This document shows, piece by piece, positions 18,001 to 60,000 of a stretch of 64,000 nt of DNA (the first letter of the stretch is position 1; each line of letters begins with the position of its first letter). The notes below the pieces were generated by a model, which saw nothing but the letters and a program-made list of their open reading frames with translations, was not told where the DNA came from and did no database searches. The stretch lies in assembly GCF_000315625.1 (NCBI RefSeq), contig NW_005434634.1, positions 458,531 through 522,530 on the forward strand, written 5' to 3'. Source of the stretch: Guillardia theta CCMP2712. Lineage: Eukaryota; Protista; Cryptophyta. The position numbers and the translations under genes are program-made.

Positions 18001-21000
18001 AATTTATTGTCAGTATCTATGGGCTTTACTTTCAGAAAGATGTTCATCGTTGCATTTTTGGATGGAGCAATCCCACTGAAAGTGTTGTATTTTCATCTTC
18101 CCATATACAGTGCTCTGCATTAAAGTTGAATAATTCCAACGTTTCAGTATCTCTTGAAGTTTTTGGAGGAGGCATGCCTATACCTTATCGGAAACTTGTT
18201 TATTTTCACAACCATCCAAGAATTTTGTATATTTTGCCTTCCCAGATCTTCGAGGACAGTCGCACATTAGTTTTCGTAGGTGTGAGGAACTTGCTGATGA
18301 GTGACAAATTGGTGTGTCGTTTTAACCATACTCAAACGTTTGGGACTTTGGTTTATTTGAACCAGATAAAGTGTTTGAGTCCTCGAGATTCTAATCATAA
18401 GATTTTACCTTTTACATTAGAAGTGTGTCGCCAGAACTCATCACTGATAGCGGTTGGCAAGTTTTACATTGAGATTGTCAAACCTCCTATGATTGAAAAA
18501 ATCATTCCTTCAAACGGGCCTCTGCACGGCGGCACAAGAATTCGAGTAATAGGTAGTCATTTCAGTGCAACGTCCAATTTAAAATGTTGTTTCGACCATC
18601 AGGAGACCTATCTTCAAACAATTTCATCCAATCTGGCTATTTGCCTGTCTCCTCAAGTGGCATCTCGTCAACGTTGTAATTTTAGGTTGTCTTTAGGATG
18701 TAAGGATGAAAATGAAAGACTTGGATCAGGCAATTTAAGTTTCGAATTCTTCAGTGAATTTGAAATGTTTTCTGTTTTGCCATCACGATTTTTCAATCAT
18801 CAATTTGATCAGTTAACTGTTTTTGGAAATGCATTTTCCAATCCGTTAAAGTTGAGATGTGCTTACAGCAATGGTATATATAGCGAATTAAACACTGTAT
18901 ATGTCTTGAGTTCAACGAAATTGCTGTGTAATACTCCGACAAGATTTCAAAATGGGAAGGTGCAGCTGGAAATTACTAGCAGATTAATAGTTTCAAGATC
19001 TCTAGGAATAGAATTGATTATTGAACAAGCAACGAAATTGACCGGGAACAGTGCTCAAGTCGTGAATATGTCTCTGTTCTCAAACGATTACAAAGTCGTT
19101 TTTACTCCTACATATCTATTTCTCAACAGGATATCAATCATAACTGTCCATGGTAGCAATTTCATGAAAGATTTTTCGTGTAAGATTGAAGGAGCAGGAT
19201 TTGTAAAGTCTGTTCTCTTGAGCAGCATGGATATTCTGTGCCGTGTATGGAAAACAGGATTCGGAAAGTCGAAACTTTGGCTAACCAGGGGTGATGATGA
19301 AATCATTGCAATGTCAAGTGTACACACCATTCATGCTCCCAGGATACGCACCGTTACTCCCACAATAGTAAAAGAAAATGAGCAAGCATTGATAACGATC
19401 CTAGGAAATGATTTTCCATACGTAGAAACATCTTGTCAAAACAAGTATGGAATCATGAATGCAATTCAAATCAATATTACCACCATGATATGCCCCGTAT
19501 TGTTTGGAGTGGCTGGAAATGACTACTTGACTATAATGTTTCCATCCTTGGGCCTCAAATTCAACTACACAACCCTCACTATTGCAGTTCCTGAATTCCA
19601 TTCATTGATTCCTTCTATCAGTACATCTCATACACAGCGTTTGACTCTTGTTGGGAATCATTTTCCAAATTTGGAAATTGACTGTCATTTTGGAGCTTTG
19701 AAAACAAAAGCGACATTCTCGTCTTCCTCGACCATTATTTGCGATTCTCCAAAGACGAAAAGCCACATGCCCATTTCAGTTAGTTTTATGGTCTCAGGAG
19801 AGATAACTCAGTTTAGGAGCAAGCTAAGATATTTGTACTTCGATTCAGACCATATCTTGAAGCTGAAACCAAAATCCTTTGACTGTCTTGTGGAGCAAAT
19901 CGTAACAATGATCGGCAACAATTTCCCGAACAATAAGTTGAAGGTAAAGTTTTCGAACGGAGACATAAGATATCCAAAATTTATGTCAAGCACAATGCTT
20001 CTAATGAATTCTCCCAGGTCCTCCTTTAAGAAATTGCGTGTATTTATCTCACTAGATGATGTAAATTGGATGATTGTCAACTCGACATTATTTTGTGCTC
20101 TGCCTCCGTTCATTTCTACCATTCTTCCAACATTCGTGACTTGGAATGTGAAATCTTTGACCTTAATTGGAAACAATTTTGACAAATCGTTTCCATCATT
20201 TTTCAATTTGGGTGCAAGGAAGGGTGTGGGAATATTCGTATCAACAAGCATGATGATTGCACCGATTTCTCATTTGGCAAGCGGCAATTACACAGTGCAG
20301 GTGAAATCAGATTTATCTGTTGGAAGTTTTCAACGTGATATCAAACTCATCGTTCAAAGAGAGCATTACCCCATGATGATTAAACCGTCTTGTGGAAGTT
20401 CAGATCAGGGTCATAGTTTGATAAATTTATATTTTAAAGATGGAGCCCAGAATATGTCAGCCGTCACAGGCATTTATGTTGCAAATCAAAAACTTGAGTA
20501 TCAAACTCACCGTGATTACATTCAGATCGTTTTGAAAGCTCGTGATGTAATTGAAGAAAAAGGTGATGTCTTACGTCTAAATGTCCTTTGTAATGATCAT
20601 AGCTTTTACCTTGAGTACAAGCATGTTCCAATCACGAGGGCATTCATTGCTCCCTCTGTCGGACCTACACAAGGAATGACAGCAATTCGAATTCTTTCGC
20701 CGCAAATCCGGAATTCTTCAAAATTCCATTGCATCTTTGACCAGAATTCATATGGTAGGCTTATTCAGTATGCTGATAACAGAGTCTATTGCATTTCTCC
20801 CTCATTCGTCGAGAAAAAGGTCAAACTTCGGATTGTATCTTTGTCCAATTGTGAATCCTTTGAAACCGAGTTCCGCTTCCTGCCTGCTCCTGAAATACAA
20901 TCAGTGAGATCTCAGGATGCAAATAGAGTCTATATTCGTCTGAATCACTCTTTTGATGAAGAAAACATATCCTGGACGGCAAGCATCGGAGGTAAAATTC

Positions 21001-24000
21001 AAGTTGCCCTCAGGCATTGGGATAAGCAAACTCTGATCGCTTCTATCCCCAAATTGTATCCTGGAAATCATTCTATTCGAATCAGTTACAACGATCAGCA
21101 ATATAGCATGGAAGCGGTGTCATTTTACGTTCCTGAATCAATCTTCTTGTTGAAAGTGAATCCATCGGCTGCAACTTTTTTGTCAAAAGTGCGTGTATAT
21201 TACAAGATGAAGCATAAATCTGAAAGTCTATTTTGTCATTTTGGACAATCCAAGCTGTACAGATCTCCTTTGTTGGTTGAATTTGGATTGTCTGGAGAGA
21301 AATACTTTTGCAAAGTTCCCATCTTGCACCTCAGACAAAATGTTTTGTTCCTCTGTGATTTGAATTGTCAGAAACAAAGCAATCATGTGAAATTTGAGTT
21401 CATAACAAAGCAAACTGACACGCAGCAATTGCTCATAATTCCTACCCTTGTCCATCTATTCAAAAGGACAGCTGTAACAATCCGGGGATCAAACTTCAAG
21501 AATGTCGAAAGTCATCTGATTGGCAGGCATGGAATTCATGGTCAACTGGAAACAAACTTGCTATCCATCAGCGAAGCTATCTGCTACTTGACACCGACGG
21601 AAAGGAACATGAGCATTGAAATAGTAGTTAACCATGCATACACTGCGCAACTACCTTTGTTCATTTCAAGAATACCGATCTTCATGGACCTGGAAATTTG
21701 GAATGATCACGAGAATCATACCTTCAAATGGTTGACAGTAAATGGCAAGTATCTAGAAACATTCATTCGAGGACGATGCATCTTTGCAACCGTTTACAAA
21801 ACAAGAATAACTTCCATTGCGAGCAATGGTAGCAGGCTTTCATGCCCGTTACCAACAGTCAGGTACCCTGCAAATTTGACCCTCAAAATTGAAACCGAAA
21901 CCCAGGAAGCAATTGAAACAGGGCTTGTACTCAGTACAGAACCAGTACAAATCATGCTGATTACGCCTTCTGCAGGCCCTATTCATGGACGTACTCTTTG
22001 TCGTATTCAAGTGTCAACAATGCTCTCGGCCAAGCAGTCTTTCCGCTGCTCCTTTGGAGTGAGTAAAGCTGAAGCCTCATTGTATGATAGAACAAGTGTT
22101 GTTTGTTACACTCCACGGGGTAGTGAAGGTCTGTACGATGTTCGGGTACTTAGTATCTTCGATACGGTGGTCGGCTTTTCTCGTCATGCCTATCGCTACT
22201 ATGAATCACCAGTCTTGTTAGCATTGCAACCCAGTGCTGGCTCGAGCATCTCTAAGTTTGTTCTGACCCTGGTTGGAAAGACGTTTCTGAGTCAGTCCAT
22301 CCTTCGGTTTTCTGGTTCGCGCGCAGTGCTCCGATCAACTGTTCTGTCTTCATCCCTCATGCTGGTTTTTGCGGAGCGATGTCATGAAACAGACACTAGG
22401 ATCGAAATTGCAGGTAACGGACAAGACTTTGAAACAATGTCGAGCACATTCTTGTGTGCACCGCCAATCCGCGTACAACATATACAACCGACTTTGGTTT
22501 CAAGAAATCCTCGCAGAATTTCCATTGTAGGAGAGCATTTTCCTACTAGGAGTGATCTAAGATGTCAGTTCGGTCTTCAACGAGCAACTCTGAGCTGGAT
22601 TTCATCTACGCTCATGATTTGCCTAGTCCCGAGTGAAATGTATGGAAATCTTTCGATGAGTGTGTACGACAGCAGAAGTGTTCGTATGACGAGGTATTTT
22701 CTTTTACTGGTGCAAAACCCTCCGTCAGTATTGTCCATCATTCCTTCCTTTGCGTCCTCGGCAAGGCCGTTAATGGTTGAAGTCCTTGGAATGAATATTC
22801 TCCCACATTCGTACTGCATCTTTGCAGCAGAGGAATATGGTACGATAAGTACCGAATCGAAGTTCGTCACAAGCTCACTTGTGCGTTGCTCGTCTCCAGA
22901 GGGGACAGAAGGAACTTTCAGCGTATGCTTACATAGCAAAGATCTTCCTATTGCCGTGTCGTCGAGCACATGTATGCCTTTTGTCAGCCATCGTCTGTAT
23001 GATCCGGAAATCGTTTCAATCTACCCAACCTCTTCACCAATATCTGGAGGCCGCATATTGACTGTTTCTGGAAACAATTTCTACCCTACGCAGTCAGTTT
23101 GCATGATTGATGATCAGATGGTCCATTCCAAAGTTTTGTCCATCTCAAAGATGGAGTGTGTTGTTCCTCCTCATGAACCGGGCCCTGTGAATCTGCTCGT
23201 CACATCTGGAGATCAAGATGGTACAACGAGTGAGCAAATCGTTTTCAACTATGAATTCGACCCAACTATAACGAGTGTCATCCCCATCACATCTTCTGGG
23301 GAATCTGGGGTAGTTTTGACAATCAAAGGATCCCACTTTGCTAACACCATCGAAGCAAGCTGCAGCTTAGGAGGCGTCCCGATGAAGAGTACATGGCTGT
23401 CAAGCTCACACGTCCAATGCTCCGTGGATTTTAGCATAGGAGCCGGTGTTTTCTCAGTCGAATACACGAATGATGGTCAAGCATTCACAAGTTTACAATC
23501 ATTGTATATTGGAACGAGGATCAAGATGACATCCATTGAACCATCAATGTCAACGACACGAGGTGGATACTCTGTGAAGGTTCGGGGGACCGGCTTGCTT
23601 CAAACTGTCGACATGAAGTGCATGTTCCAGGAAAATATTGGTTCAGTGGTGATGGAGGTACAGGAAAATGAGTTTGTATGTTATACACCTCCTTCAGAGA
23701 TCCCTGGGACTGTGAGACTTTCCTTGCTTTCAGATTCTGGTAAGAGAATTCAGAGCGATCTCCTATTCGAGTATATACCTGATCTCTTGGCTCATTCCCT
23801 CTTTCCATCGTCTGGGCCATCAACAAGCAGCAGTGAAGTAGCTGTCCGAGGGGAGTACCTGCCACTCAATGGATCTGTCAAGTGTGTCTTCGGTGGTCAA
23901 GATACCACGGGGCTGGTTATGACATCATCATATATGAGATGTATCACGCCAGTATCTAGACAGGTAGGAACCATACCTTTCTCCTTGAGGATAGGCAAGA

Positions 24001-27000
24001 TAGCCGTTGGGACTCCCCTAAAATATGAGTTTGTAGAGGCTCCACAGGTCTTTGGGATGATTCCCTCGCAGGGCCCAGCGGAAGGGGGCACCAGGGTACT
24101 GCTTTATGGGGCAGGCTTTGATGTGGGACAAGGAATACGCTGCAAGTTTGGGTTGGAAGACGAAAGCGAGTCAATGGCACAAATAAGCTCTTCAACGGCT
24201 CTTCATTGCATCTCGAGACCAGGAAAAGCACAGAACCTAACCATTGGGATTGGCAATAGCGTCATTGGCTTCACATTCACCAAAACTCCTTTCGAATTAC
24301 TTGAGGTGATGAGAATCTTTCGAGTGTATCCTACAAAGGTGCCTGTGAACAGAGATACACAGATCACCATCGAAGGTACTGGCTTTGGGCAATATGCTGC
24401 TTCATGGTGTTGTATTGAACATGGTCAAATGTTACAAGTGGCAATCATTTCGAGCATCAGATTGCTTTGCAATATTTCCTACAGAAAATCGGGTCACAAA
24501 TCACTATATCTTGTTGAGAGAGCCGGTATGAATTTCATTTGATTCACTTTACTCGTTTTGATTGAATGTACAGGTTGGAAGCTTCAAGAAGAATATGGCG
24601 ATGTTTCGAGTCCCTTATCATGGACTGAGGTAGGTGACTTTGATCTAAAGTTCTTACGTCGATTCGTTACCAAAATAGAATTTTCCGAGCGGTCGAACGT
24701 TGCACAAAATTGTTCAAGCGTGCATTGCAAGTTACCTGCAAATTTGCATCGGGTGGCTTATGACCTCAAAGATACAAAGAACTGCGAGAAAGGGTGTTTT
24801 CTTGACTCAAGGAACACATCGTATCTGATTGACATATTTCCGAATACAATCTTCTCTGGAACCTCGAATACAATACGTGCTTTTGGTCAATTCTCAGAAT
24901 CGGATTCATATCGATGTGAAATTTCACATCAGTCGATGATCGCCACAAAGATTTCCAAGGGAGAGATAGTATGTGAGATCTTACCCCTTGGGATGGGATT
25001 ACATGAATTCAAATTGATATCAGATACAAATGACATCCTCACAGCACAGATCAACTGTGTCCCTATGAACTTAGACATTACACCTTCACTTGGTCCTATA
25101 CTAGGAGGGACTCTCGTGAGAATAAGTAACCCGCTGGGCTTGAATATCTCTGATTTTAACGTAGCAGTGAAAGAATCAATGGTAAACTTCACCTCCAAGT
25201 CTGCATCTGAGCTATATTTCAAGATGCCTCCCAGCCTTGCTGGCAGCCTCAAAATATCTGTCAAATGGAAATTGGAAGAATTTTTAAAGATAAAATTCCT
25301 GGTTACCGAAATTCCAAAAATTACTGCCATCCTTCCTTCAGTTGCACAGGTCTCGAAAACACTAAAAATTTCATTAAAAGGACGAGGCTTCATTGCCAAT
25401 TCCACTTACGTCAAATTTGGAGTCGATTTGGCGGAGGAAGTTTCTGTGCTTTCCTCGTCGCTCCTGATGTGCAAATGTCCGCAGTCCCAACTCGAAGGTA
25501 AAGTATTACTGTCAATCAGTACGAATGACCTGGATTACTTCTCTTATGATGTATCATTTACATTCATGCCTATGCCAAGAATATTCTCGGTGTTTCCTAC
25601 GTGTATACCGCCTTCAGGAGGAGTCGAAATATCAATATACGGAACGAATTTCTACGCACATGGGTTAGATTTAAGTGTGTTGATCGGAAGACAAGAAAGT
25701 TTTGCAAATCTGATTACTAGTACCATGCTTACGAGCGTTTGCCCAGTTTTGAATGAGTTTGCAAACCTCTCAGTCACATTGAGTGTTGGAGACGCCATGA
25801 TCGAAGGAGAAAGGGAGCCGTTACATGTCTGTAATGAGTTGAGCTTGTTGCGGGTTGTGCCAACGATCAGCTACGTGGGCAATCAGGTGCTTCTCACACT
25901 CTATGGCACAGGCTTCCGCGCGAAAATGCTCATACTTGCTGGGAAACGAAGACTGGATTGCGCAGTGAATGATCCTCAATCTGCAGATTGCCGAATCGAC
26001 GCTCTTCCAGTAGGCAACATATCTCTCCATATTTTGGGATCAGGCACAGAGCCAATTCAGTATAGAATTCTTGAGCGACCAACGGTGTACGCTGTTCATC
26101 CTACGGGGGTCTCGAGCACAGAATCCAGAGCGATTACTATATTTGGTCAAGGTTTTACTGAGCATATACGGGAGATTGGACTTCCTGGATGCAAAATGTC
26201 AGAGACTGATGCACTTTTGTTTTCTCTCTACAGCTCAACAATGCTTACATGTCAGTCAATATCATTTTCAAACTTTTTTGCGTGTATATTAGATCTGCCT
26301 TACGCAGATCGTATGCATCAATCGGGTACTTATGCTGTTCATTTCATAGCACCAACAATAGCATTTCCTCACAGTCATATCCTTATCCACGTGGGTACAA
26401 GAAATCCGGATCGTGCCATTGGAAATTGTCGATTTGGTTTGAAGCACTCAGTGTCTATTATTTACAAGAATTCTTCACTGTTGCTCTGCAAAGTTCCAGA
26501 TATAATTCCTGGGAATTACACATTGTCGATCCAGTTACAATCATCACTTTTCGAGTGGCAATATTCCTTTCATTTATATATAACAAAGGAGCCAAATATA
26601 TTTTCCATAATGCCATCCATATCAAGCACTTGTGGCGAAAGGACAATATCGATTTTAGGTTCTGCTTTCAATCAGCACATCCCCTTTTACTGCATGCTCC
26701 ATTCTCCCCACAAAGTGAGTATTGAGAGCCATTGGTTGTCTTCTTCAATTTTGACGTGCCTACTTCCAAGTGGTAGTGAGGGAAGGTTAAAGCTACAGAT
26801 CGTATCAGCTCAGTTACAAAAATCTTATAAAACGCTGACACATACCTGTATTCAATGCCGTGTTGAACATATTCTGATTCAGTCTCCGACCAAAATGATT
26901 GTTCAAGGTCACTTTCCTGCTGGATTTGAATACCATTGTGAGATGAATGAAATCCAAGTGAGAACTTATTGCAACGAAAGAGAGCTAATCTGCATGATAC

Positions 27001-30000
27001 CATCTCAATTCAACAAAAAAGGCGTCACTATTCTGAAAGTGAAAATCGGAAAAAATACTATTTGTTATGAAAACCAAACACAATTTCACACAGCGAGATT
27101 GATTCAAAGCAATCTGCAAGGATCCATTAAGAAATTTTCAAAAGCAACTCAACACTTCATATTGGAAAACGAAATTCTCGAAATCCTTCCCTCTACAGGC
27201 CCTATTCATGGACGTACTCTTTGTCGTATTCAAGTGTCAACAATGCTCTCGGCCAAGCAGTCTTTCCGCTGCTCCTTTGGAGTGAGTAAAGCTGAAGCCT
27301 CATTGTATGATAGAACAAGTGTTGTTTGTTACACTCCACGGGGTAGTGAAGGTCTGTACGATGTTCGGGTACTTAGTATCTTCGATACGGTGGTCGGCTT
27401 TTCTCGTCATGCCTATCGCTACTATGAATCNNNNNNNNNNNNNNNNNNNNNNNNNNNNNNNNNNNNNNNNNNNNNNNNNNNNNNNNNNNNNNNNNNNNNN
27501 NNNNNNNNNNNNNNNNNNNNNNNNNNNNNNNNNNNNNNNNNNNNNNNNNNNNNNNNNNNNNNNNNNNNNNNNNNNNNNNNNNNNNNNNNNNNNNNNNNNN
27601 NNNNNNNNNNNNNNNNNNNNNNNNNNNNNNNNNNNNNNNNNNNNNNNNNNNNNNNNNNNNNNNNNNNNNNNNNNNNNNNNNNNNNNNNNNNNNNNNNNNN
27701 NNNNNNNNNNNNNNNNNNNNNNNNNNNNNNNNNNNNNNNNNNNNNNNNNNNNNNNNNNNNNNNNNNNNNNNNNNNNNNNNNNNNNNNNNNNNNNNNNNNN
27801 NNNNNNNNNNNNNNNNNNNNNNNNNNNNNNNNNNNNNNNNNNNNNNNNNNNNNNNNNNNNNNNNNNNNNNNNNNNNNNNNNNNNNNNNNNNNNNNNNNNN
27901 NNNNNNNNNNNNNNNNNNNNNNNNNNNNNNNNNNNNNNNNNNNNNNNNNNNNNNNNNNNNNNNNNNNNNNNNNNNNNNNNNNNNNNNNNNNNNNNNNNNN
28001 NNNNNNNNNNNNNNNNNNNNNNNNNNNNNNNNNNNNNNNNNNNNNNNNNNNNNNNNNNNNNNNNNNNNNNNNNNNNNNNNNNNNNNNNNNNNNNNNNNNN
28101 NNNNNNNNNNNNNNNNNNNNNNNNNNNNNNNNNNNNNNNNNNNNNNNNNNNNNNNNNNNNNNNNNNNNNNNNNNNNNNNNNNNNNNNNNNNNNNNNNNNN
28201 NNNNNNNNNNNNNNNNNNNNNNNNNNNNNNNNNNNNNNNNNNNNNNNNNNNNNNNNNNNNNNNNNNNNNNNNNNNNNNNNNNNNNNNNNNNNNNNNNNNN
28301 NNNNNNNNNCCTGTTTCCAGTTCTATTCTGGGGAATTCATAATCAACAAAACAATTTGCGTTGATGCTTTTGAAATACCATATTTGTTTTATCTATCTCC
28401 TAGCATTGGTTCCACCCTGGGGGGTTTCCCTGTTTCAGTCTTTGGGCGTCACTTACAAGAGCACAGCGATTGTTTTGTTGGAGATCAGAAGGCTTCCCAT
28501 GCAATGGATCTCTTCGCAAAATGTGGTTTGCTTTGTTCACTCTTCAACAGCAATTGGTGTCATTCCTTTCAGAATCTTCCCGAGAAATCTTCATGCGGAA
28601 TCGAACAAGCTGCCATTCGAATTCTATGATTCATCATACGTCTCTGCCATCACACCATCTCTAGTTACGACAGAATATCTTGGTACGATAACCCTTTTTG
28701 GTACAAAATTTGTCAGTAATCACGATTTCATGATAAATTTCGGGAACACTTCGCAAGTCAGAGGAACTCTGCAAACATCAACCATTGTGACATGCGTCAT
28801 GCCCAGATCCTTGCTTGCATCCAAATATTTGTTATACATCTCAATTGATGAAAGAATGGCCTCTAATCATAAAGTCTTCACAGTGAAAAACATTTTGCAA
28901 ATACAGGGTATATCACCTACAATCGGTTTCTCAAATGGGGGCACCATTGTTCGAGTGTTTGGGCACGGTTTTAGTAATAATGGCGTACTATCCTGCAAAT
29001 TCGGGAATTTTACAACAGTGTTGAATGTGCTTTCTGACAGTGCAGCAGAATGTGCAAGTCCTACGCACAAGAAAGCAGTTGTGATTTTTGTAGTGGTTGC
29101 AAGTCAACATCAAATTTCGAATATGCTTCATTTTCAATATGTAGATCCCTTTGTTCTCATCGATGTCCTTCCCATGAACACAATACCTCTGAAACAATAT
29201 CAATTCACGATGCTTGGAGAAAATTTTTTGAATGCTGAATTGTATTGCAGTTTTAAATTTAGTCAAAGGGTTCGAGCAAAAGTTGTTTCATCGAGTATGT
29301 TAATGTGTAATGCAATCGGGCCTATTGAATCATCAGAGGTGACTGTGTTCTTGAACGCGAATGATCGTTCCAATTCAAAGGAGCTTCGTTCAGTACACAA
29401 TCCAATCATGTCCAGTCTGAAACCTGCATCATATTCAAAACTTCCTTTGACAGTAACAATATCTGGAAAATTTTTCCATCAACATTGTCCTTTTGCAGCT
29501 CGCATTCAGTCCCGGCATCATTTTCTTGCTTCCACACTACACTCTTCATCCAAGTGTACGGTTCTGATTCCTCCAAGTTTTGATCGGAATGTCAACGTCA
29601 GCATTGTGATTGTTTGTGAAAATATTGAAGTCTCACAGAACTCTCTGATTCTGACCAGTCTTCGCGCATCTAAATTCAACCTCGTGCCAACGATTGGACT
29701 TGTGACTGGTGGTGAGATCGTTTCGTTTGTCAATACTCAATTGCATGTAAATGCCAACGAAGTACAATGTAGATTCGGAAATATTATGACTTCTGTCAGT
29801 TTGAGTCTGAATGGAACTCTGACCTGTATTACTCCCTCTCATCCTCCAGGTTTTTCCTCCGTCGCATTGCGCTTCGCTGATTTTGATGATTTTACTTTTC
29901 AGTCATCATTTTATTTCCACAAGTTGATCGAAGTCGATTTTCTGAGACCCTGCTTTGGTTTGATTGGTCTTCCGTTCACCCTCACTATACATGGAAGGTC

Positions 30001-39000: not shown

Positions 39001-42000
39001 TCCTGCACAACCTCCTGGAACATGGACTATTTCCGTTTCGATTTCAAACTCATTTTTTGCGGATCGACGTATCAATTACACCTATTATGTAAATCCTGTG
39101 GTCAGTCACATTGTACCGAGCAAAGTCTACAGGAACCAAATACTAACAATCACGCTTCTCGGGAGAGGATTCCTCCTTGGATTTGATCCGATTTGTATGG
39201 TGGGAGGGATTCAGTCAAGAGCCCAAATATTTTCGAGTGAAACAGCGCTGTGCACAGTCCAAGGATTATCTCTCGGGATCTTTACAGTAGAATTCTCGAA
39301 TAACTTCCAAGACTTTACAAGCGACCGTCAAACACTTACTGTAACAGAATGCTTTGGCGAGTGTGCGAAGCTTCAAAATTCCGATGATTCTTGCAGGAGA
39401 CACAGGGGAGCTGCAAGAGACGGTGGATTTTCCTGGATAAGATTATCACCATCAGCCTCATTGATAGATGAATGGTATTCGGGGATGACCTTGCACATTC
39501 TGTCCAATCAGGGAGCTGGCCAGTTTGTTCGAATTTCATCGTATGATGGAAGGGAGCAAATAGCAAGATTCAGTCCCCTAAATATTAAATGTGGCTGCTC
39601 CCTGCCATTATCTGCATTTGGGGCAAGGAACCGCTCCAATGACATTCCTTGGGAAGGCACTTCACAGTTGTACTGGTTACCCGACGGCTCATCAGTCCCC
39701 GGCCATTCACTCGATCCGATTTGCAGCGAATACTTGATTTCATTTGAAGACTGTTATTCGCATCTTGACTTTCGATTTAATTTGGATTTCATGTCTCCAG
39801 GATTCCTTGTAGAGCAATCATCTTTTTTTTACGATAATAAGTCTATCTTCTATCAAAATGTCAGTACACTTTACAATTTTCCTCCAAGAAGCTTTGGAAA
39901 AGCTGTTGGGAGTGTTTCCTACGGAGCTAGAACTATCTTGAAATCAAAGCCTTTGTATTATTCAACGGTTGCAGATGAACCTGACCATAAATCTCTCAAA
40001 TGCTTGGTACAAGACGAGAATGTTTGGATAGACTCTTCAATCATCAGATTTGTATGTCAAGTCAGAGATCAACATGGAAGATCTCAAATCAAATCTCAGG
40101 AATTTTTCTGGAAACTCACGGTTGGAACACAAAACAAGACTGGAATATGTACCTTCAGTCCTAAAACAGGTCTGACCATTGGATGCAATATTATTATTGA
40201 AAAACAATGGTTCGGATTACAAAATATCACCACAGCATACATCACTGGAACGCTGAATGGCAATGATGTTTCTGTTGGCTCTGTGCACTTACAGTCTGTC
40301 GGGTCCATTGAAGAATCATCAACCTGGAAAGCATTCTTGAAAATTCAATCTGATGATATTGTTTTTGGAGCTAATTCATCTCTAGAATTGTACTTTGCGC
40401 GACCTTGGCATTCTTATCCACTGATGAGTGGTGTTGTGTTCGTCCTTTTTGACTCTCAAGTCGTCAACTGTAATCTTGAAGCTGTAGAATGGGATAATTT
40501 CTATCATGATCTCTCTACTGCAGTGCTTGCGAGGGACGGAGTATTACAGGTGTACTTCGCAAAGAATGTTGACGTTTCTCAAAGTCTGCCGTCAGAAAAC
40601 GGATCTCCGAATGTTGAAAGGATTGCGAAATTTTACTGCACGTTCAAGTGCAATTCTAGCACACGTATAAATGGATATGTTGAAAGTGCAATCGACACCA
40701 AAAACAACCTTATCATAGGTGGCAAAAGGGGAGAATTACCCTTGATCATTCAAAACCGATTCGAGTCCACCAAAAATAGTATTGAACAGTCAAAGTCATT
40801 GCAAAATGGTCTGTTGGTCAGTATTTCAGGTGAGGACCAGATGAGAGGAATATTTGCCGTCGCCGACTCAAGCATCCTCTTTAACATTCCGGCACTCGCT
40901 GGACCGAACTATATGCAAGTGGCATACGTGCGAATTTTTTTGGTGTACTCGAGAAAGATTGTCGAGCTCAATCCTCCTTCGAAAGATGATAGGTTGAAAT
41001 GTGAGTCCACAGATCCATCAGTAGCTTCAACCATATCAGAGAAAAGTTGTGATTTGATATTGACTGGAAATGAGTATGCTGGATCAAAAGATCTTAAGCT
41101 TTTGGTCACATTCACGCATGAATTGTTTGGGGTGTTCACAACAACTGTGCCTTTTGTTGTTTGGTTCCCAGTCGCTTTGAATGTTCTATCTCCAGTAGGA
41201 AAAGGTGGGGGACTTGAAAATAGAATACAAATTCGGTCGATAAAGGGTTTTACGAATGACTGTGAAAATGACGAGTTGAAGTCTTCGTATGAAACTGCAA
41301 AGGTGAGATCGCAAGTGACCTTCTCAACGGGAGTGGATCTAGGGGTGGATGTTGGATCAAGGTTAATTTTCTTCCTTGATGATGAATGGGTAACGTATAG
41401 CACGAATCAGAGCCAGACGACTGTATCTGTGAACAACGGCATTCTATACATCTCTGATCGTTACCCCAATTTTGGAAATCCTCTTGCATTTCTCGTCATT
41501 CCAAAGACATTTTCTCTGGGAGTTAAAATCACACCTTTGGAAGTTGAGGTTCTACAGGCCAGCCAATCATCAATCGTTGACTTGATTCTGTTTGCTCCAA
41601 ATAGGATCAACATATATTTCTCAGATAACACCACTTTCTTTAATACTTCGGAACAGATCATATTGACTGGTCAAGTACAGCAAACTGTGTTCTCAGTTTC
41701 TGCGCAACAATATTCAATATTTGGAGTTGCAATTTTAGACGATGGTATGACCTTTGATGTCGGACCAAATAACGGCCTCATAATTCACGAGAATGGACCA
41801 TTTGGGAACCTCAAAATAGTCCCAGATAGCAATGTCTTTTCAGTTTCAATGTCGTCTAATCAATCTGGAACCTATTCGATATCTGCATACATTGAAAAGT
41901 GTGGAAAACAGTTGGTTTCGTCTGCATTCTTGATCACGTTCGATCCATCGACAGTAAAAAGTATACAAATAATATTCGAAGGACCGTTGAGCACAGCTGA

Positions 42001-45000
42001 TATTTATACATTAGTCGTTGATCCTTTTGATCCATTAGTTATTGCAGAACCTCCTGTTTGCAGTAGCCTGCAAATAAGAAAGTATTTTATAGAATGGGAA
42101 GATTTATCATCCCTGTGGCTGAATCGAGATGATACTCGAATCAGTCTTTTCATACAAAACAACGATACGATTTTGGATGAAGGAAACTTTACTTTCAGAT
42201 GTAAAGCAGAGGGAAGTGCTTCAATTTGCGCAATCCTTGCTTTCATGGGAAGGACCAAACAAACTTGTGTGAAAGTCCTATGCATTTCATCCTTGTACGT
42301 CGAAATTCTTACTGTTCCTTGGCCATCTCTCTCTGATAACTCAATTTTTAAGAGAACCCTGAAGCCGATTGGAATAAGTAAAGTTGCTCATGAGAAGTTT
42401 TTGGAGTCGCTGCAAATCAACGCAAGTTTAACTTCGAGTTCATTAACACGTCATTGGATTTCTCACTTAGTTTCTCAGAAAGAAATTTGTGATGTCCGTG
42501 AATGTAGACTTGTGCGAATCTCTTTTGAAATTTTGGATCCTCTCAATCTAACTTTTGTCAGTTCCTTAGAGGGAGATAATCAAAGCTTATTTATGCATAA
42601 AACTGTTGTCAACATAGAATCCAGAACGGTAAAACTTGTTGGGAAATTGTTAGTGCTGTCAGCTGGTGCTTCAGTCGAATATCTGGTCTCACCAGCGTGG
42701 GAAATTCAAGTCTTATCATCTCCTGCTTCCGTAATTGGTCTTGATCTTCAATTTCCAGAATTATTTACAGGAATCAAAGGATCCCAACGTCACATTCTTT
42801 GCATAGTAGAGATCGAGGATGAATGTGAATTTGTCAACAATAGTCCACAATACAACATTTCAGGCCGAATCACTGGGATAGTAACAAATCGAACTGTTTG
42901 TTTGAACAGGCTTCAAATGCCTACAAATCTTGTCTCTGCTCACCTGAATTTCTCTGCATCGAATCCGGACAGAATTATGGTATATGAAGACGGTATGGCA
43001 ACACTTCTAGAATCTCATTTTGATAGGGTATTGATCAAAGGATACATGATGAACAACATACAGGATGAAATTGGAGTATGGGTTAATCTCAAGGCAAACC
43101 AAGGAGATTTTGATATCGGGAATATGTATGGACCACCATTTTTATCCCTCTCTTCAAAAGACTTCGTTGAGGTGCCAGTATACTTTCGAACAGACACTAT
43201 GAAGAGATTCGGAGCAATCCTTATCGATGTAGTGTTTGACACACAACAATTGAAATTTGAGAGCTGGAACGTGGGAGCCTCGGTAAAAAAGAGTCAGATT
43301 TGGACAAATCCGTACTACATGGATGAAAGTTCAGTCCCTGTATGCAGAATTTTAGCAATATTGAATGATTTCAAAGAAGACAACGAAGGATATGTACATG
43401 TAGTTGATTTAAAGATGATACCTTCGGTCGGTTACAAAGGATCTTCAATACAAGTCATCGTTCAAGAAGCGGTCTATCGAAATCAGTTGACAGCTTTTGA
43501 ATCCCCTCAGAGTGACATGTACTTGACTAGAACTTTGTCAATCGCTGGAAATGTATCTATTCCGGCATACAGAGAAGGAATCAGTGTACTTCGTATAGCA
43601 CACATGAGTGATTCTTGCGCAAACTTTCCTTCAAATCCAATGATCGTTTGTGGAATTATCATAGATGGAACTGGAGTCTGTTGGAATGGAAGCACAACGA
43701 TTTCTTTGCGAGGCGCAGATGGGTTTTTAGTACCAGATGATTACCATTGGATTCACATAACTGTTGGAATACAGCAAGTCTGTGGAATTACAGTCATGAA
43801 ACAGTTAATCTGTTGGAATTTTGTCACAAACACCATCGAGACTCGTGCAGGTGGTTGGAAGTACCTCTCAAAAGAAAATGAGAATTTCTGTGCAATTGCC
43901 AACCAGGGAATAGTAGAATGTTGGAATTCTTCGTTATCAGATTGGAACGTGGTAACTTACACCAGTTCATGGGAGATTCTTGCTGTTTCTAATGCTTTCC
44001 AGTGTGGCATTGACAACAAACGATTTTTGTCTTGTATTTCGGATACGTCGATGCAAATCGACTATGAAGGAGAATACTTTGATCTTATCAATGACGAAAA
44101 TTATCTTTGCGCCATCAACAATCAGGCTATGATTGTTTGTTGGGTAAACCATGATATTCAAAAATCGTTACTTCTAGACATGTCAGACTGCTTGCATTTA
44201 TCTTCGGCAAGTCCATCGAGGTTCACTGCAATTTTGAGAAACGGATCTGCATTTCTTTTCCATTTTGATTCTCTTTCCAGAACATTTTCTGCGACACCTG
44301 TTGTTTCTCTTGAGTTGCGCTGGGGCAGTATCTCAATAGGGGACCCGCTTTCGTGCGGAATTTTGACTAATGCATCGGCCATTTGTTGGAATACTTGTGG
44401 CGAGACACTTCTTAACGAGGCATTGCATGGAAAATTGTTTTCAACTGCATTTGTGGATATTGACCTGCAGTTCCCTTTGGTTGCGAATCTTCCTCCATCC
44501 AATCAATCAAATTGTTCATGGGTCAGACGTGTGCGAGGAAATGTCAACGCTGATTGCAAAATTACTGCACTAGATCTTGAGTTCTTATTGTGGTTTATCC
44601 ATGGTGTTCTACCTAAATGCTCAAATGATATACCCTGTGTGGGCAACCCATCAGATTCTCTGTTAGAATGCAGCCCAACATACAGCGTCTGCACTGGTAG
44701 GGGGGGGACACATCTGATGGACATGGATATGGATGGATTCATCACGATAAGAGATTCTGAACTTCTTGCTTCGACTCTTATTGGGACTACCTACATAGTT
44801 CTGCAATTTTGGATGCAGGAGATTGCTGGAGCTCAACCCATGTTGAAATTCTGGGTAAGTCTTGTTGATGTAAATCTTGATTCTCCAACAAACAAAACTG
44901 CATCAGTTTGGATCGAGACTAAAAATCTATACAGCACTGCATCTCAGACAATGTTCGTTGGAATTCAGGAGTCACCAGGAACTTGGCTTACTACGATTCA

Positions 45001-48000
45001 ATATCAAGATGCAAGTCAGGATGTCGGACTCGTCCTTATAGTAGAGAAAGATAACCAAGGAGTGGTGAGACAGGACACCTACCAAGAAAGCGAAATTTTG
45101 AATGGAACAAGCTTTATTCCATTGGTGTCTGTCAATGAATCAATAACGAGTGCAATTCAGTCTCAATTGAGATACCATAGTGTATCGACAGCAGGAAACA
45201 TGCTCTCAATATTTCTCCAAGCAAAAGACAACTTTGGGACTCCGCGGATGGTTGGCGGAGATCTCATTCAACTGGAAATATCTGCACGGCACATCAATGA
45301 ATCTGTTTGTGTTTCAGCAAGCAATGATGAAATCAAGTTGGATCATTGCGATATGAATGGATGCTTGGTGCAACTGTCAAGGAATGACACTTGGACAACA
45401 GTATGCCCAATCAACTTTGACTCCTTCGAGCTGAATTTGATTTGCAAATCCCTCAGTCTCTCTTCGGCACATTTTTTTTCGCAAAACATTACATACAATC
45501 TATCACACGAATCTACATATCCGTTATCTTGTAATGGAACTGAATCTTACATTTCTGATTGCATTCGAGATTTATCCATGATTCAACCATGCATGATGAG
45601 TGCTAGGATTTTTGCATGTTGTCAACTGATGAATGAATTTAGCATCGAGAAGAACATACAACAGGAAGTGATTGATCACAAGAATGGTTCGTACTCAATT
45701 TATGCCTTCTTGACCCTGAGTGCATCTTACTCGATCATTCCATCGATTAATCATCAACACATGACTAAAGGTATACTTGTGAATGTACTTCCCGCCAAAG
45801 CGTGTGCAGAAAGAACGATAGTCTATGGAGCAGGACTAACTTTGAATTTCGCTGGAAGTTGCGGTTCCTTCTCAATATTGGGACGTGACTCATATGGAAA
45901 TCTAGTTGATTTCGAATTTGGCGACATTCGTATCGAGCTATCTTTGCAGGGAAATATAGTACAGTCTTTGACGAAACCAGACGCGGATAACTACAAGAAT
46001 TGTGACTGTGAACTATTGTATCCTTTAGGAAAGGGCCGCATCATGAGCAGATATTTTCTAACTATCTCAGGAGTCTATGGCATTGGAATTCATTTGAATC
46101 ACTCGTTTTTTACGCAATACGATTCAGTTCTGCAAATTAAAGCATCAAATGTATCACCTTTTCAGACATTTGTTGAAATACAGTCGTTCATTCTCGTGGG
46201 AGAAAGGCAGTTAGTATATATTCATTTACGAGACGCATTCGGAAATTTGATTAAACAGCAAATTGTGAATCACAGTTTGTCTGTAGAATTGTATGGTCCA
46301 TCATATATTGAAACAGAATACACTTCGTCTGACTTGGACAATGGGACGTCAACCTATCAATTTGTGGCTACTGTGACTGGCAGATATCAACTTATTGCAA
46401 CTCTTGATGACCAACCCATTTCTGGAAGTTGTGATCAACCATGTATTTTGATAGCTTCACCAAACCCTGTGGCAGATTTCAGTACAGTACGTGGAAACGG
46501 GTTATCAGTTGCAACAGCTGGACAAATGTCTAAATTTGATATCATAAGTAGAGATCAGTATCTCAATTTGCGAACATCTGGACAGGACCAATTTATTGTA
46601 GATATTTATCCGTTGAATCCACAGACAACAACGTCCTCTATGCTTCTGCGCAAGGTCACTTATTACACAGATGGTCAGTACGTCGCTCAATACTCTCTGA
46701 CAAAATCAGGCCAATACAAAATACGTGTTGCTTTGTATACTTCAAACGATTGTTCAAACTTGACTTGCCAAACTATTTTGCAAAACAAAACTCTGTCTGG
46801 GAGTCCTTTCGACCTTCAAGTCCATCCATCAGATATCACTTCTCCCGAATCCAGTTTCATACATGGGAAGGGCGCTAGCATGTACTTTGGAGCATCTGGA
46901 ATCGCAGGCGAATTCAATGAATTTCTCATTCAAGCCATCGACATATTTGGGAACATTCAGGAGAGAGGTGGTAGCGAATATTTCTTCCACTTGATGGAAT
47001 ATCCTTGTTGCCTTTCAACGAACTTTGATCTCATCCCAGCGTGCTGTGCAGGGAACATGGGACCCAAGATTTCAGACATACCACCACAATGCAGTAATCT
47101 TTCCATGTCTCTTTATGGAATTGAGACCTGTTTAGAAGGCTGCACAAATACTTCTTGTATGGACAATCTTCATTGGAAGAGTTGTCCAGTAGACAACTGC
47201 TCAATCATAAGCACCAATCGCTTCGGATTTGTATATGGAAGCTTCAGAGACTGGGGGACTGGAAGCTATACACTCTCCTACCTTGTTACCACTGCAGCAA
47301 AATACATCTTAAGGGTTTACATGAATGTATCTAAAGATGGAAAGATCACCGCACAAGAGGTAGGTACATACAATCAAATTTCTTCTTCAGCTGGAGGTCT
47401 AAACCAGCTAAATACTTCCACCATGTCGACAGAATACTCTACTGAATCACATTCAAGCCCTCTTGTCATATCAGTTGCACCTGCTGCAACAAATTTTCCA
47501 TCTTCAAGGGCTCGAGGCCAAGGCATATCTTTTGCGATTGCTGGTGTAAATACAAGTTTCTTTATAGATACACGAGACCGTTACGGAAATCTCAAAACTG
47601 ATACAAAAGATAAGTGCTGGGAAATCAAGATCAGAAATTTCCAAAATACGGATCCCATCATTGTGAGTGATATTAGTGGTACCAGCGGCGGTTCGTATTT
47701 GGTGACCTATTTGATCACTGTTGCTGGTCAATATATCTTGTCCGTAGGATGCTACGGTGTTCACATCATGCAAAGTCCATTCCAAATAGAAGTAAAATCT
47801 GGTCCCTCTGGAATCACTTCATATCCGTTTGGCACGTCTCTCAATCAATCTAGAGCTGGCGATGTTTTTGAATTTTTTATCCAAGCAAAAGACGACTTTG
47901 GCAATGCTAAGACAGTGGCTGGTGATGAATTTCGAGTTCTGCTTATTCTCACAACAAGGAAGGTTCGGATCTCATCGAACGTCACAGACTTGGGACTCAC

Positions 48001-57000: not shown

Positions 57001-60000
57001 AACGACTGCTGGCAGTTACATGGTTCGTGTACTGGTAAGCTCTGTTGAGATATCTGACAGCCCTTTTCATTTTTTGGTCGAACCTGGCGAACCTTTTCAA
57101 AACACCACATCAATCGACCTGCAGGAGGGCCAAGGATATCTCCTTGGGACAGCGGTTACCATTCTCATCACGATCCGAGACAAGTATTGGAATCTCAGGT
57201 CTACGAACTTTGATTCGGTTCGTCGACTAGAGAATAATGCATATGGAGACGATAAAATGATAGTTTTTCAGAACTACTTCACAACTGTTTGCAATGGATC
57301 GTCATGTATGAGAGTTTCTGGTACAGACTTTGTCTTCATGGACATGGACTCTCGCGGAACTAAGTACACTGTGTCCAAAGTGTCCTCGAGTGGGGAATAC
57401 TCATTATCATTCAGACCTAGTGGGGCCAATAGAAGTACTTTCAATCTTCTAATTTGCGATCGTCTATGTTGTGAAAATGAAACGAAATGCCCTGTTCTTG
57501 ATGTTTGTAAACAGAAAGGCGATTGTGAACAAGCATTTTGCTTTGTGGCTACAAGTCTTCAAAGTCGGATCCACCATCCCTGCAAGGGAATGAAAGACTC
57601 AAAAAATAATTACAGTCCATTTACCCTCTTCCCATTCACCACCTATGGGGGAACGAGAGCAGCAACTTCGATAGCCTTGGGAAGTGATATCATAAGTACG
57701 GGATCAACGCCATACATAATGCACACCGCAGGAAATCCAGTCACATTTACTATCAGAGCTATGGATGAATTTGGAGTCCAGGCAAGTTCAGGTGGTGATA
57801 AGTGGCTCATTACAATCGTTAGATATGATACAACTAGTGGAGATGCGATCTCAACCAACATTCTTTCCACCATTACTGACAATGGTAATGGACTGTATGA
57901 TTGCAAATATGTCATGACACTCTCTGGTCCATACTTTTTGGAAATCAAACATGCAGATATTGACAATCGAACTGGAATTGTAAGAGCTCCCATGCAAATC
58001 AAAAATAGTCCGTTCTTTAATCTGGTATCTCTTCCGAATTCCACGCAAGCTGATAAAAGTACATTGCAAATAGTTACCTTGTTCACATGTGGGATTTCAT
58101 CAACATTTCTCCTACAGACCTACGACACGTTTGACAACAAGCAGTTGTATGCTTCCACTTCTCTCCCACAAAGTATAAATAAATACAAAGATTACATCTC
58201 CGCTAGATTTGTTTTGGGCGAGGTGTTTGTGACAGCCTCAATCAAAAATTATCCGGTATGTGCTCCCAACCCCATTTTGAGCGCTGATATTCTTTGTACG
58301 CCATTTGTTTTGGAGGGATTAATCACAGTATCTGGAAATTATAAACTGATCATCGAGGTGAATATGCAAGTTATCTCTAAGATCGACTTTTCAATCCAAG
58401 TATCACCAGGATTACCAAACCCCCAATCCTTCTTGCTCAGCGGCACGGGCATACAGCAATCTGTAGCTGGTGTGATTTCTACATTTTCGCTGAGATTGTT
58501 AGATTCGTTTTCCAATCGTGTATTCATATCGGTGGCTGTAGCTTCAGCAAAAATTGTTGGATCCATCAATGGTGGGTCCTACTCTTGCTACCGGGCAGAT
58601 GACAGTCTCTGCGTAGACCCAACTCCAATCTCCACGTCACTGAGCATTTCTCCCTCACAGCCTGCAAACTTTCTGGAAACTGAGACAAAGTATAGTGATT
58701 GGATACTGACGTACAATTGTACTAGGGCAGGTAACCATTCGTTGCAAATGTGGTACGATAATGCAGGAATTTCTAATTCTCCATTTACACTAGAGGTGTT
58801 AAATAACGTAGTGGATTCGAAAATTTCATCAGTTATGCGATTTGAAACATCTGACATTCAGAGTGGATCTAATCAACATTTCTATGTGTACACCCGAGAT
58901 TTGTATGGAAATCTTGTAACAAACTTCTACGGCACATTCAGTGTTTTATTGTTTGGTCCATCTTCCATGACAGGGACCTTGTCATCCACTGCTGAATTTG
59001 GCATTTTTGGGTGTTCACTCACGCCAACTGTGAGTGGATCTTACCGTCTTACTGTGAAGCTGATTGATTCTCACATAAGCGGTAGTCCAATGAATTTGAC
59101 TGTGATTGCAGGAATGGCGAGTGCGCCTCGTTGTTCTATCGTAACCTCCCCAGGTGTTGGAACAGTGGGTATTGCATCCTCAATATATTTTCAGGCACAT
59201 GATTCCTACAACAATAAAATTTTGACGGGTGGAGACATATTTTTGGCTGAAATCACGGATCCTAAATTTGCACGTACGATCGTTGTGCCAGCCGATTTGA
59301 ACGATGGTATGTACAGACTGACCTTTGCCTCAAGTGTAACAGGACGACACAATGTTACCATCACTCTAGGAGGCTCGCATATATTTGGAAGTCCCTTAAG
59401 CATGCTGATCGACTCAGGAGCACTTGATTTGGGTCAAACGTTGATAGTATTTCGATCGACAACCGAAGCTGGAACTCCTCTTCGAATATCAGTCCTTCCA
59501 AGGGATGCTTATGCAAACGAGAAGTCTCAAGCAGATCTGATGCTTTACTTGCTTACACTTGTGACTTCGATTCAATTAGAATTCAATTCCAACGCAGTCT
59601 TCTATGAATATCCTGACAGCAAGTACTCGTACGACGGCTATGTCACATATACCCGCTCAGGACAGTATACCGTCCAATTAAAAGCACTTCAAGTCAATTC
59701 TGCCGGTATTTCAGAGATGCAGGAGTTGTCGAGTTCCCCGATTCTCATCACATGCAACCCATCTCTTCCAAATGAAACAAAATCGTTTGCTTTTGGGCAA
59801 GGAACCTCAAGGTACTGCATGCCAACTGTACCTGATGTTCTCTGACTTTTTTCCCAGGTTAATAGCAGGTCGAAATGGATCATTTACAATTGTTGCAAAA
59901 GATGAATACTCAAACAATCTTACACGAGGAGGTGACCCTTTCATTTTCTGGTTGATTTACACGAATCCAGTAATCCGAATGAATCAGACTGTCCATGACT

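Follow-up and report, generated by a model that had tools for sequence, protein, structure and literature searches.

TMEM132 proteins and their relatives

The extracellular architecture of the TMEM132 proteins has been described as a conserved region, a cohesin domain, and three BIG domains (Sanchez-Pulido & Ponting 2018; PMC6030884). The same five-domain cassette has been published as part of giant cadherins in choanoflagellates and sponges, and the origin of this five-domain architecture has been placed in the early holozoans (PMC6030884). Here we consider a stretch of 64,000 nucleotides (nt) from Guillardia theta CCMP2712 (contig NW_005434634.1, positions 458,531 to 522,530), referred to in its full length as the window. 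For this DNA, a first-pass annotation made from the letters alone had proposed a TMEM132-like ectodomain at 40000-43100, embedded in the middle of an apparently non-animal giant protein. All coordinates given below are those of the window, and all of the features discussed lie on its forward (+) strand.

The reading that we favor, at a probability of roughly 0.8, is that the product of positions 39971-41914 is homologous to, but strongly diverged from, the extracellular core of TMEM132 (the order of an Ig domain, a cohesin fold, and three BIG-type Ig domains being retained), and that it lies inside a cryptophyte surface giant and would act there as an extracellular binding or adhesion block. 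What is new is the host of the cassette, which falls outside Holozoa, its context in a TIG/filamin giant instead of a cadherin, and its close relatives in bacteria. In open-access text, no paper was found that links TMEM132 to Guillardia, cryptophytes, haptophytes, or protists, and the spread beyond Holozoa may already be visible in automatic annotation, e.g., in haptophyte-labelled PF16070 clusters of the ESM Atlas. On this reading, the cassette occurs beyond animals and their nearest single-celled kin, and its history is older or more mobile than has been described.

Homologues and profile comparisons

When 1.84 billion representatives were searched exhaustively with HMMER, only 6 relatives appeared at E <= 1e-3. 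The closest, P0001, aligns over query residues 4-1011 (phmmer, E 8e-38) and is a protein of 3,985 amino acids (aa) encoded by one open frame of an ENA metagenome scaffold (L005) with a guanine-plus-cytosine (GC) content of 43%. The TMEM132 models of Pfam that were considered are PF23481, PF23039, PF16070, PF23486, and PF23487. The fourth-domain model, Ig_TMEM132_4th (PF16070, cut-off 27 bits), is found in four of the six relatives at the place aligned to the window; P0001 (32-33 bits) and the bacterial P0006 (51-52 bits) score above the cut-off, and P0002 (23 bits) and P0003 (16 bits) below it. In P0006, there is additionally a match to Ig_TMEM132_5th at E 2e-4, and P0006 and two further bacterial proteins, P0016 and P0017, give weak Pfam matches in the TMEM132 order (second Ig, cohesin, fourth, fifth, sixth). 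P0003, a 524-aa protein from a JGI metagenome, shows the cassette in a further setting, an EF-hand (residues 115-137) being joined directly to a fourth and a fifth domain of TMEM132-like type.

A profile search with the P0006 family reaches an animal protein, P0018, at E 5e-15. This sequence, the "transmembrane protein 132E isoform X2" of the moth Pectinophora gossypiella, contains all seven Pfam TMEM132 domains and served as the animal reference. Two profiles were then compared with it: A2, consisting of the window and five protist-type relatives, and A1, in which three bacterial rows are added to A2 to give nine sequences, TMEM132 being excluded. With hhalign, A2 matches P0018 at 93.4% (E 2.4e-7) over 161 columns that cover the fourth and fifth domains, and A1 matches it at 97.7% (E 2.3e-12) over 543 columns, from residue 121 to residue 777 of P0018, that is, from the second to the sixth Pfam domain. 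An hmmsearch with A2 gives P0018 34.6 bits. As controls, A2 was compared with the giant's own Ig arrays, and here hhalign gave 0.4% for the filamin array and 0.8% for the TIG array. With these controls below 1%, the TMEM132 match is consequently not a matter of generic Ig similarity. A further comparison of P0018 with alignment A4 is circular, because P0018 is itself a row of A4, and it was used solely to map domain boundaries and not as evidence. The first-pass annotation had named TMEM132 profiles as the means by which its proposal should be checked; the direct scan with the window's own translation finds none of them, and the profiles A1 and A2 match the moth protein.

Motifs and domain map of the cassette

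The stretch 39998-43102 is free of stops over 1035 codons. Seven motifs had been named as an ordered series, and all seven are present in that order, each occurring exactly once in the 10,494-aa frame: CNIIIEKQWF (40184), LFNIPALAG (40877), CESTDPSV (41000), SCDLILTGNEYAG (41045), VVWFP (41156), IRSIKGF (41231), and YETAKVR (41288). In the profile alignment, six of the seven fall on corresponding conserved positions of the moth TMEM132E, with the pairings (window/moth) LFNIPALAG/VLNTAVLTG, CESTDPSV/CHSEDESV, SC..LTGNEYAG/SC..VDGSEIRG, VVWFP/TVWMP, IRSIKGF/LSQIKGW, and YETAKV/YQQSNV. The seventh, CNIIIEKQWF, aligns with the "L-T-V-P-A-A-W-W" strand of the TMEM132 second Ig domain. Since the motifs fall on conserved TMEM132 positions, they amount to more than chance.

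The motifs span only 40184-41308, and the TMEM132-like core extends over about 39971-41914. Its first domain (39971-40300) is an Ig-like beta sandwich equivalent to the second Ig domain of TMEM132; it holds CNIIIEKQWF and a conserved cysteine pair at 40148 and 40184. Next comes a domain with a predicted cohesin fold (40316-40834), equivalent to the third, cohesin-like domain of TMEM132. The BIG-type Ig domain at 40841-41194 corresponds to Ig_TMEM132_4th (BIG1), as seen in the hhalign comparison of A2 with P0018 and in the PF16070 matches of homologues at the aligned place. This BIG1 equivalent holds LFNIPALAG, CESTDPSV, SCDLILTGNEYAG, and VVWFP, and its cysteine pair (41000 and 41048) is aligned with both cysteines of the moth TMEM132. 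The equivalent of Ig_TMEM132_5th (BIG2) occupies 41210-41569 and holds IRSIKGF and YETAKVR; it is placed by hhalign and by the match of bacterial intermediates to PF23486 (E 2e-4) at the aligned place. The equivalent of Ig_TMEM132_6th (BIG3) is at 41570-41914, where the hhalign match of A1 reaches residue 777 of P0018 (whose PF23487 span is 676-790) and where bacterial intermediates have weak PF23487 matches. The published TMEM132 architecture has four conserved cysteines, two within BIG1 and two that pair BIG2 with BIG3. One cysteine in BIG2 (41261) and one in BIG3 (41900) are kept in the protist and bacterial rows, and in the moth row these are offset by at least 3 columns.

On the 5' side, the core is preceded by a conserved lead-in (39638-39970) that is common to the protist proteins P0001 and P0002 and to the bacterial P0006 family in alignment A1, the hhalign match covering the module from column 35. 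The lead-in has no match to TMEM132_N and a low predicted local distance difference test (pLDDT) score in the structural models. On the 3' side, the core is followed by more BIG-type Ig domains up to about 43100. This extension (41915-43100; alignments A1 and A4, model residues 685-800) is absent from animal TMEM132. It contains at least one further beta sandwich (about 41942-42289). A P-W-P..K-T-L motif (about 42317-42364) is conserved between it and the bacterial family, and roughly its last 250 aa are common to the protist proteins P0001 and P0005 only. By language-model features, which give a lead only, the extension is nearest to the Ig domains of NUP210 and Big_2. Thus, the range 40000-43100 originally given for the ectodomain does contain the core, but its last 400 aa or so are not specific to TMEM132.

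Predicted structure

A first AlphaFold model, made with 1161 aa and a 9-row alignment, had a pLDDT of 46 and was too poor for use. For the second, alignment A4 was built by adding ten translated bacterial loci and the moth protein, giving 20 rows; the resulting AlphaFold 2 (AF2) model of 39890-42457 (856 aa) has a pLDDT of 71.9 and a predicted template modelling score (pTM) of 0.56. When this model was compared by shape with the ESM Atlas, the nearest clusters were those of TMEM132C, TMEM132D, and TMEM132A, with a best template modelling (TM) score of 0.46 by query over 479 aligned residues. A haptophyte-labelled PF16070 cluster gives a TM score of 0.66 by target, and generic Big_2 arrays only 0.21-0.28. 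Language-model features, again as a lead only, also place TMEM132 clusters first (0.91, with 213 of 256 features in common). For the predicted third domain, the top fold matches include cohesins that were crystallised with dockerins. A profile match to TMEM132 (by hhalign) and, for the predicted model, TMEM132 clusters as the nearest Atlas shapes are at hand; the first-pass annotation had named the lack of any significant profile or structural match as fatal to its proposal.

Strength of the identification

Several results weigh against the identification. No TMEM132 Pfam model matches 39998-43102 by hmmscan, even at E <= 10; a six-frame search of the alga's own genome with PF16070 gives no match in the window; and in BLASTP the moth TMEM132E is matched over just 35 residues, at E 0.05. 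Neither TMEM132_N nor TMEM132_C is present, nor does a membrane span adjoin the cassette. The profiles were built from shallow alignments (6-9 sequences, with an effective number of sequences of 2-3), and the widest match, that of 543 columns, leans on the bacterial intermediates. Whole-model TM scores are below 0.5 throughout. Finally, in about 6% of one RNA run, 5 reads fall on the cassette stretch, so that transcription is barely seen.

Other direct searches also returned little. The region has no PDB sequence match at E <= 10, and the 1035-aa piece, used in a word-index protein search, retrieved nothing among proteins of 570-1811 aa, the length range covered. A Foldseek search of the PDB with the model had no TMEM132 among the 50 matches listed, which are generic Ig arrays (NUP210, S-layer proteins, contactins) with TM scores below 0.25, and the language-model recognition score is low (1590). 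As for the RNA, such a sparse sample shows neither silence nor meaningful expression; the same reads contain no joints, which fits an uninterrupted exon. DNA contigs from one 2011 study match the stretch at 100%.

Taken together, these results suggest that, judged by its sequence, the cassette is a distant relative of TMEM132 that falls outside the family as Pfam curates it. The proposal of a TMEM132-like ectodomain therefore stands as regards homology to the core and identity of domain order, which profiles and Atlas shapes both indicate, but the translation's own sequence fails every Pfam TMEM132 model.

The host gene

In the assembly that was searched (87.1 Mb in 669 contigs), light-harvesting proteins (LHC, PF00504) are matched 24 times and the cryptophyte phycoerythrin alpha subunit (PF02972) 23 times, and the host is therefore not an animal but a cryptophyte alga, a distant branch of the eukaryotic tree as seen from animals. 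The module is present in this genome as a single copy. The plus strand of the window is coding almost throughout. Its largest open frame, at 28361-59845 (10,494 codons), was identified from the list of open reading frames (ORFs), the Pfam scans, and the junction sequence as one exon of a larger gene. It is preceded by open frames at 499-6489, 6589-11841, 11802-24542, and 24558-28364, which carry TIG/IPT arrays by Pfam. Between adjacent long ORFs there are frame-keeping GT..AG stretches at 24526-24573 (48 nt) and 59812-59857 (46 nt), which are probably introns; the 10,494-codon exon would probably stop at the second of these, at about 59811, and the gene resume at 59858. Because these putative introns keep the frame, the long open frames are most likely exons of one gene, and the whole cell-surface giant would come to roughly 20,000 codons.

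Within the giant exon, a TIG/IPT array is followed in turn by the TMEM132-like cassette, a cohesin-like domain, a propeller, a dockerin-like module, an SRCR domain, and a filamin/GEX2-type array. The TIG arrays reach about 39000 and give way to about 2,000 residues that are without Pfam matches in the scans. Immediately downstream of the cassette and outside its core, the translation of 43103-44809, read directly, shows another cohesin-like stretch, then a propeller of seven "C.I...G...CW" repeats, and two D-x-D-x-D-G calcium loops resembling a dockerin (44507-44809), for which the Pfam Dockerin_1 match is only E 0.22. An SRCR domain follows at 45371-45623 (PF00530, 27.8 bits against a cut-off of 26.1), and filamin/GEX2-type repeats run from about 46100 to the end of the exon by Pfam. 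The cassette is thus internal to the frame, with about 3,800 codons before it and about 5,500 after it. These data bear out the description of the host as a non-animal giant and of the module as lying between two different Ig arrays, TIG/IPT on one side and filamin/GEX2-type on the other. The further statement that the module is "coupled to a dockerin" is a loose one: the dockerin-like loops lie about 1,200 residues downstream, behind the second cohesin-like domain and the propeller, and match Dockerin_1 as weakly as noted.

Protist-type relatives share these surroundings in part. In P0001, the order is cassette, filamin, EGF, and REJ, like the downstream half of the window protein but without the insert of cohesin, propeller, dockerin, and SRCR. 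The P0002 fragment has TIG repeats upstream of the cassette. Between P0001 and P0002, the domain order around the window's cassette is therefore matched in protist-type relatives.

Two features of the window concern the 5' part of the gene. An assembly gap (a run of N) lies at 40-150, just 5' of the first long open frame. At 26001-30000, the GC content falls to 0.29-0.34 and ORFs overlap in other frames (e.g., 27307-28629), and consequently it is uncertain where the giant exon truly begins on its 5' side.

Origin of the cassette

The suggestion that the module is an older cassette reused in other giants is consistent with its relatives in other protist-type proteins and in bacteria. The family is sparsely populated, its nearest members being a few protist-type proteins and giant surface proteins of high-GC bacteria. 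The P0006 contig is 40 kb long with 58% GC and tightly packed genes on the same strand, and the other bacterial loci have 63-73% GC. A copy from a metagenome-assembled genome (MAG) in GTDB (L006, contig CAZLMW010000008.1) lies in a locus of 64% GC, and its 8.2-Mb genome holds three PF16070-positive frames of 1,182-3,244 codons. Among 61 related genomes, 8 have PF16070 above the cut-off. The L006 protein carries MopE-type and Dicty_CTDC Cys-rich repeats, and the title of its record, "uncultured Enterobacteriaceae bacterium," looks doubtful. A word search with P0006 returned its own bacterial family only.

In hhalign, A2 matches the single bacterial sequence P0006 at E 5.7e-27 over 773 columns, and it matches the bacterial alignment A3 at E 1.5e-31 over 775 columns. 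Since A2 fits P0006 far better than it fits the moth protein, the cassette is closer to the bacterial giants. Bacterial and cryptophyte forms have in common the lead-in, the extension past the sixth domain, and a cohesin or cohesin-like domain that follows closely, namely a canonical cohesin (PF00963, 43.5 bits) in P0006 and the cohesin-like stretch from 43103 in the window.

These findings have led to another hypothesis for the history of the cassette, which contests the evolutionary reading and not the identification. In this model, the cassette is a bacterial adhesin block by origin that moved among bacteria, cryptophyte-type protists, haptophytes, and holozoans, so that there would have been no vertical descent from an early eukaryotic TMEM132 precursor. 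The better fit of the protist profile to one bacterial sequence than to one animal sequence would be expected in that case, as would the shared extension and downstream cohesin, both of which animal TMEM132 lacks, the patchy distribution in eukaryotes that the handful of HMMER relatives implies, and the single copy in this genome. However, the comparison covered a single animal sequence, and transfer may have gone in either direction; the carriers detected among bacteria all come from a single group, in which only 8 of 61 sampled relatives have the cassette, a pattern that transfer from a eukaryote to a bacterium would fit equally well; and fast divergence in animals could mimic a greater distance. 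Furthermore, the GC content of the window (about 40%) and the continuity of its codons with the flanking TIG and filamin arrays bear no mark of recent acquisition. We consider a bacterial origin conceivable, though with the odds leaning against it.

Function

All that is said here of function is what we infer from homology and position. Most likely, the cassette would be an extracellular, disulphide-stabilised block for protein binding or adhesion, which stalks of Ig repeats may carry away from the cell, and its likeliest binding surface would be the cohesin-fold domain. The idea that the cassette is an internal "hinge" is conjecture; in the predicted model, it appears as a chain of beta-sandwich domains with an overall shape like that of the TMEM132 models.

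A bolder proposal is that the cassette serves as a hinge and that its cohesin-type domain binds the dockerin-like calcium module, either within one chain or on an adjacent molecule, which would reveal the class of ligand that the TMEM132 cohesin ancestrally bound. The predicted cohesin fold of the third domain, with dockerin-crystallised cohesins among its top matches, is in keeping with this, as are the double D-x-D-x-D-G segment in the same exon and the canonical Pfam cohesin after the cassette in bacterial relatives. Against it stand the poor Dockerin_1 score, the second cohesin-like domain at 43103, which is a much nearer and more obvious partner, and the absence of any dockerin from the bacterial relatives in Pfam at E <= 0.01; in addition, animals have no detectable dockerins (PMC6030884). 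Such a pairing therefore seems improbable. A broader version is that the TMEM132-type cohesin was ancestrally half of a calcium-dependent lock of the cohesin-dockerin style, that the pairing operates in the cryptophyte giant and its bacterial relatives, and that the cassette reached eukaryotes from bacteria. This too would be a long shot; if true, it would be the first hint of what kind of ligand the animal TMEM132 proteins bind. Whatever their partner, the bacterial versions should express more easily than the animal proteins and could be used both for structure determination and in the search for a partner of the TMEM132-type cohesin.

Lastly, the view that any BIG or Ig array with a few common strand motifs would look like this, the TMEM132 label being a chance best match, draws on the missing direct Pfam match, the BLASTP E value, the generic Ig arrays among the listed PDB matches, and the low recognition score, but it is very improbable and already largely refuted, because homologues score above the Pfam TMEM132 cut-off where they align with the module, the match keeps the same order over five domain types with a non-Ig cohesin fold in the correct slot, the giant's own Ig arrays score below 1%, and TMEM132 clusters rank above Big_2 arrays in the Atlas shape search.

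Comparison with known systems

Identified as a diverged TMEM132 core, the cassette can be set beside five known systems. One is formed by the bacterial and archaeal cohesins of cellulosomes and of Clostridium perfringens glycoside hydrolases (e.g., PDB 2vo8, 1ohz), from which the third domain differs in its low identity (9-15%), in the lack of any Pfam cohesin match on the window sequence, and in having a dockerin partner that is only hypothetical. Receptors of the polycystin-1/fibrocystin type are alike in the TIG/IPT arrays of the host, and P0001 joins the cassette to filamin, EGF, and REJ; polycystin-1 and fibrocystin proteins are not known to contain a TMEM132-type cassette.

The cadherins of choanoflagellates and sponges (lefftyrins, coherins, and hedglings; PMC6030884), which were compared by publication, resemble the window protein in that the cassette sits inside a huge surface protein made up of many domains. 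They differ in their flanks, which in the window are TIG/IPT and filamin/GEX2, the Pfam scans of its open frames having found no cadherin family, and the host of the window's cassette stands outside Holozoa.

The animal proteins TMEM132A-E are like the window's cassette in the order of Ig, cohesin-fold, BIG1, BIG2, and BIG3 domains, in the signature motifs of BIG1 and BIG2, in the BIG1 cysteine pair, and as the nearest shapes in the ESM Atlas. Unlike them, the window's sequence stays below every Pfam threshold, and its cassette is without TMEM132_N, TMEM132_C, an adjoining membrane span, or a cytoplasmic PP1/WIRS tail. In addition, an animal TMEM132 is a single-pass protein of about 1,000 aa, with a signal peptide and TMEM132_N ahead of the ectodomain and the membrane span, TMEM132_C, and PP1/WIRS tail behind it, whereas the window's cassette belongs to a giant of about 20,000 codons in a cryptophyte host and is followed by extra BIG-type domains.

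The closest resemblance is to the giants of bacterial MAGs (P0006, P0016, and P0017; loci L006-L016), in which the lead-in, the five TMEM132-type domains, and the extension recur in that order and are then followed by a cohesin. These proteins differ in their Dicty_CTDC and MopE-type Cys-rich repeats, in having no TIG, filamin, SRCR, or REJ domains, and in the canonical form of their cohesin (PF00963). Bacteria and the cryptophyte thus have a "long" type of cassette in common, to which animal TMEM132 is related as a more distant, shorter form.

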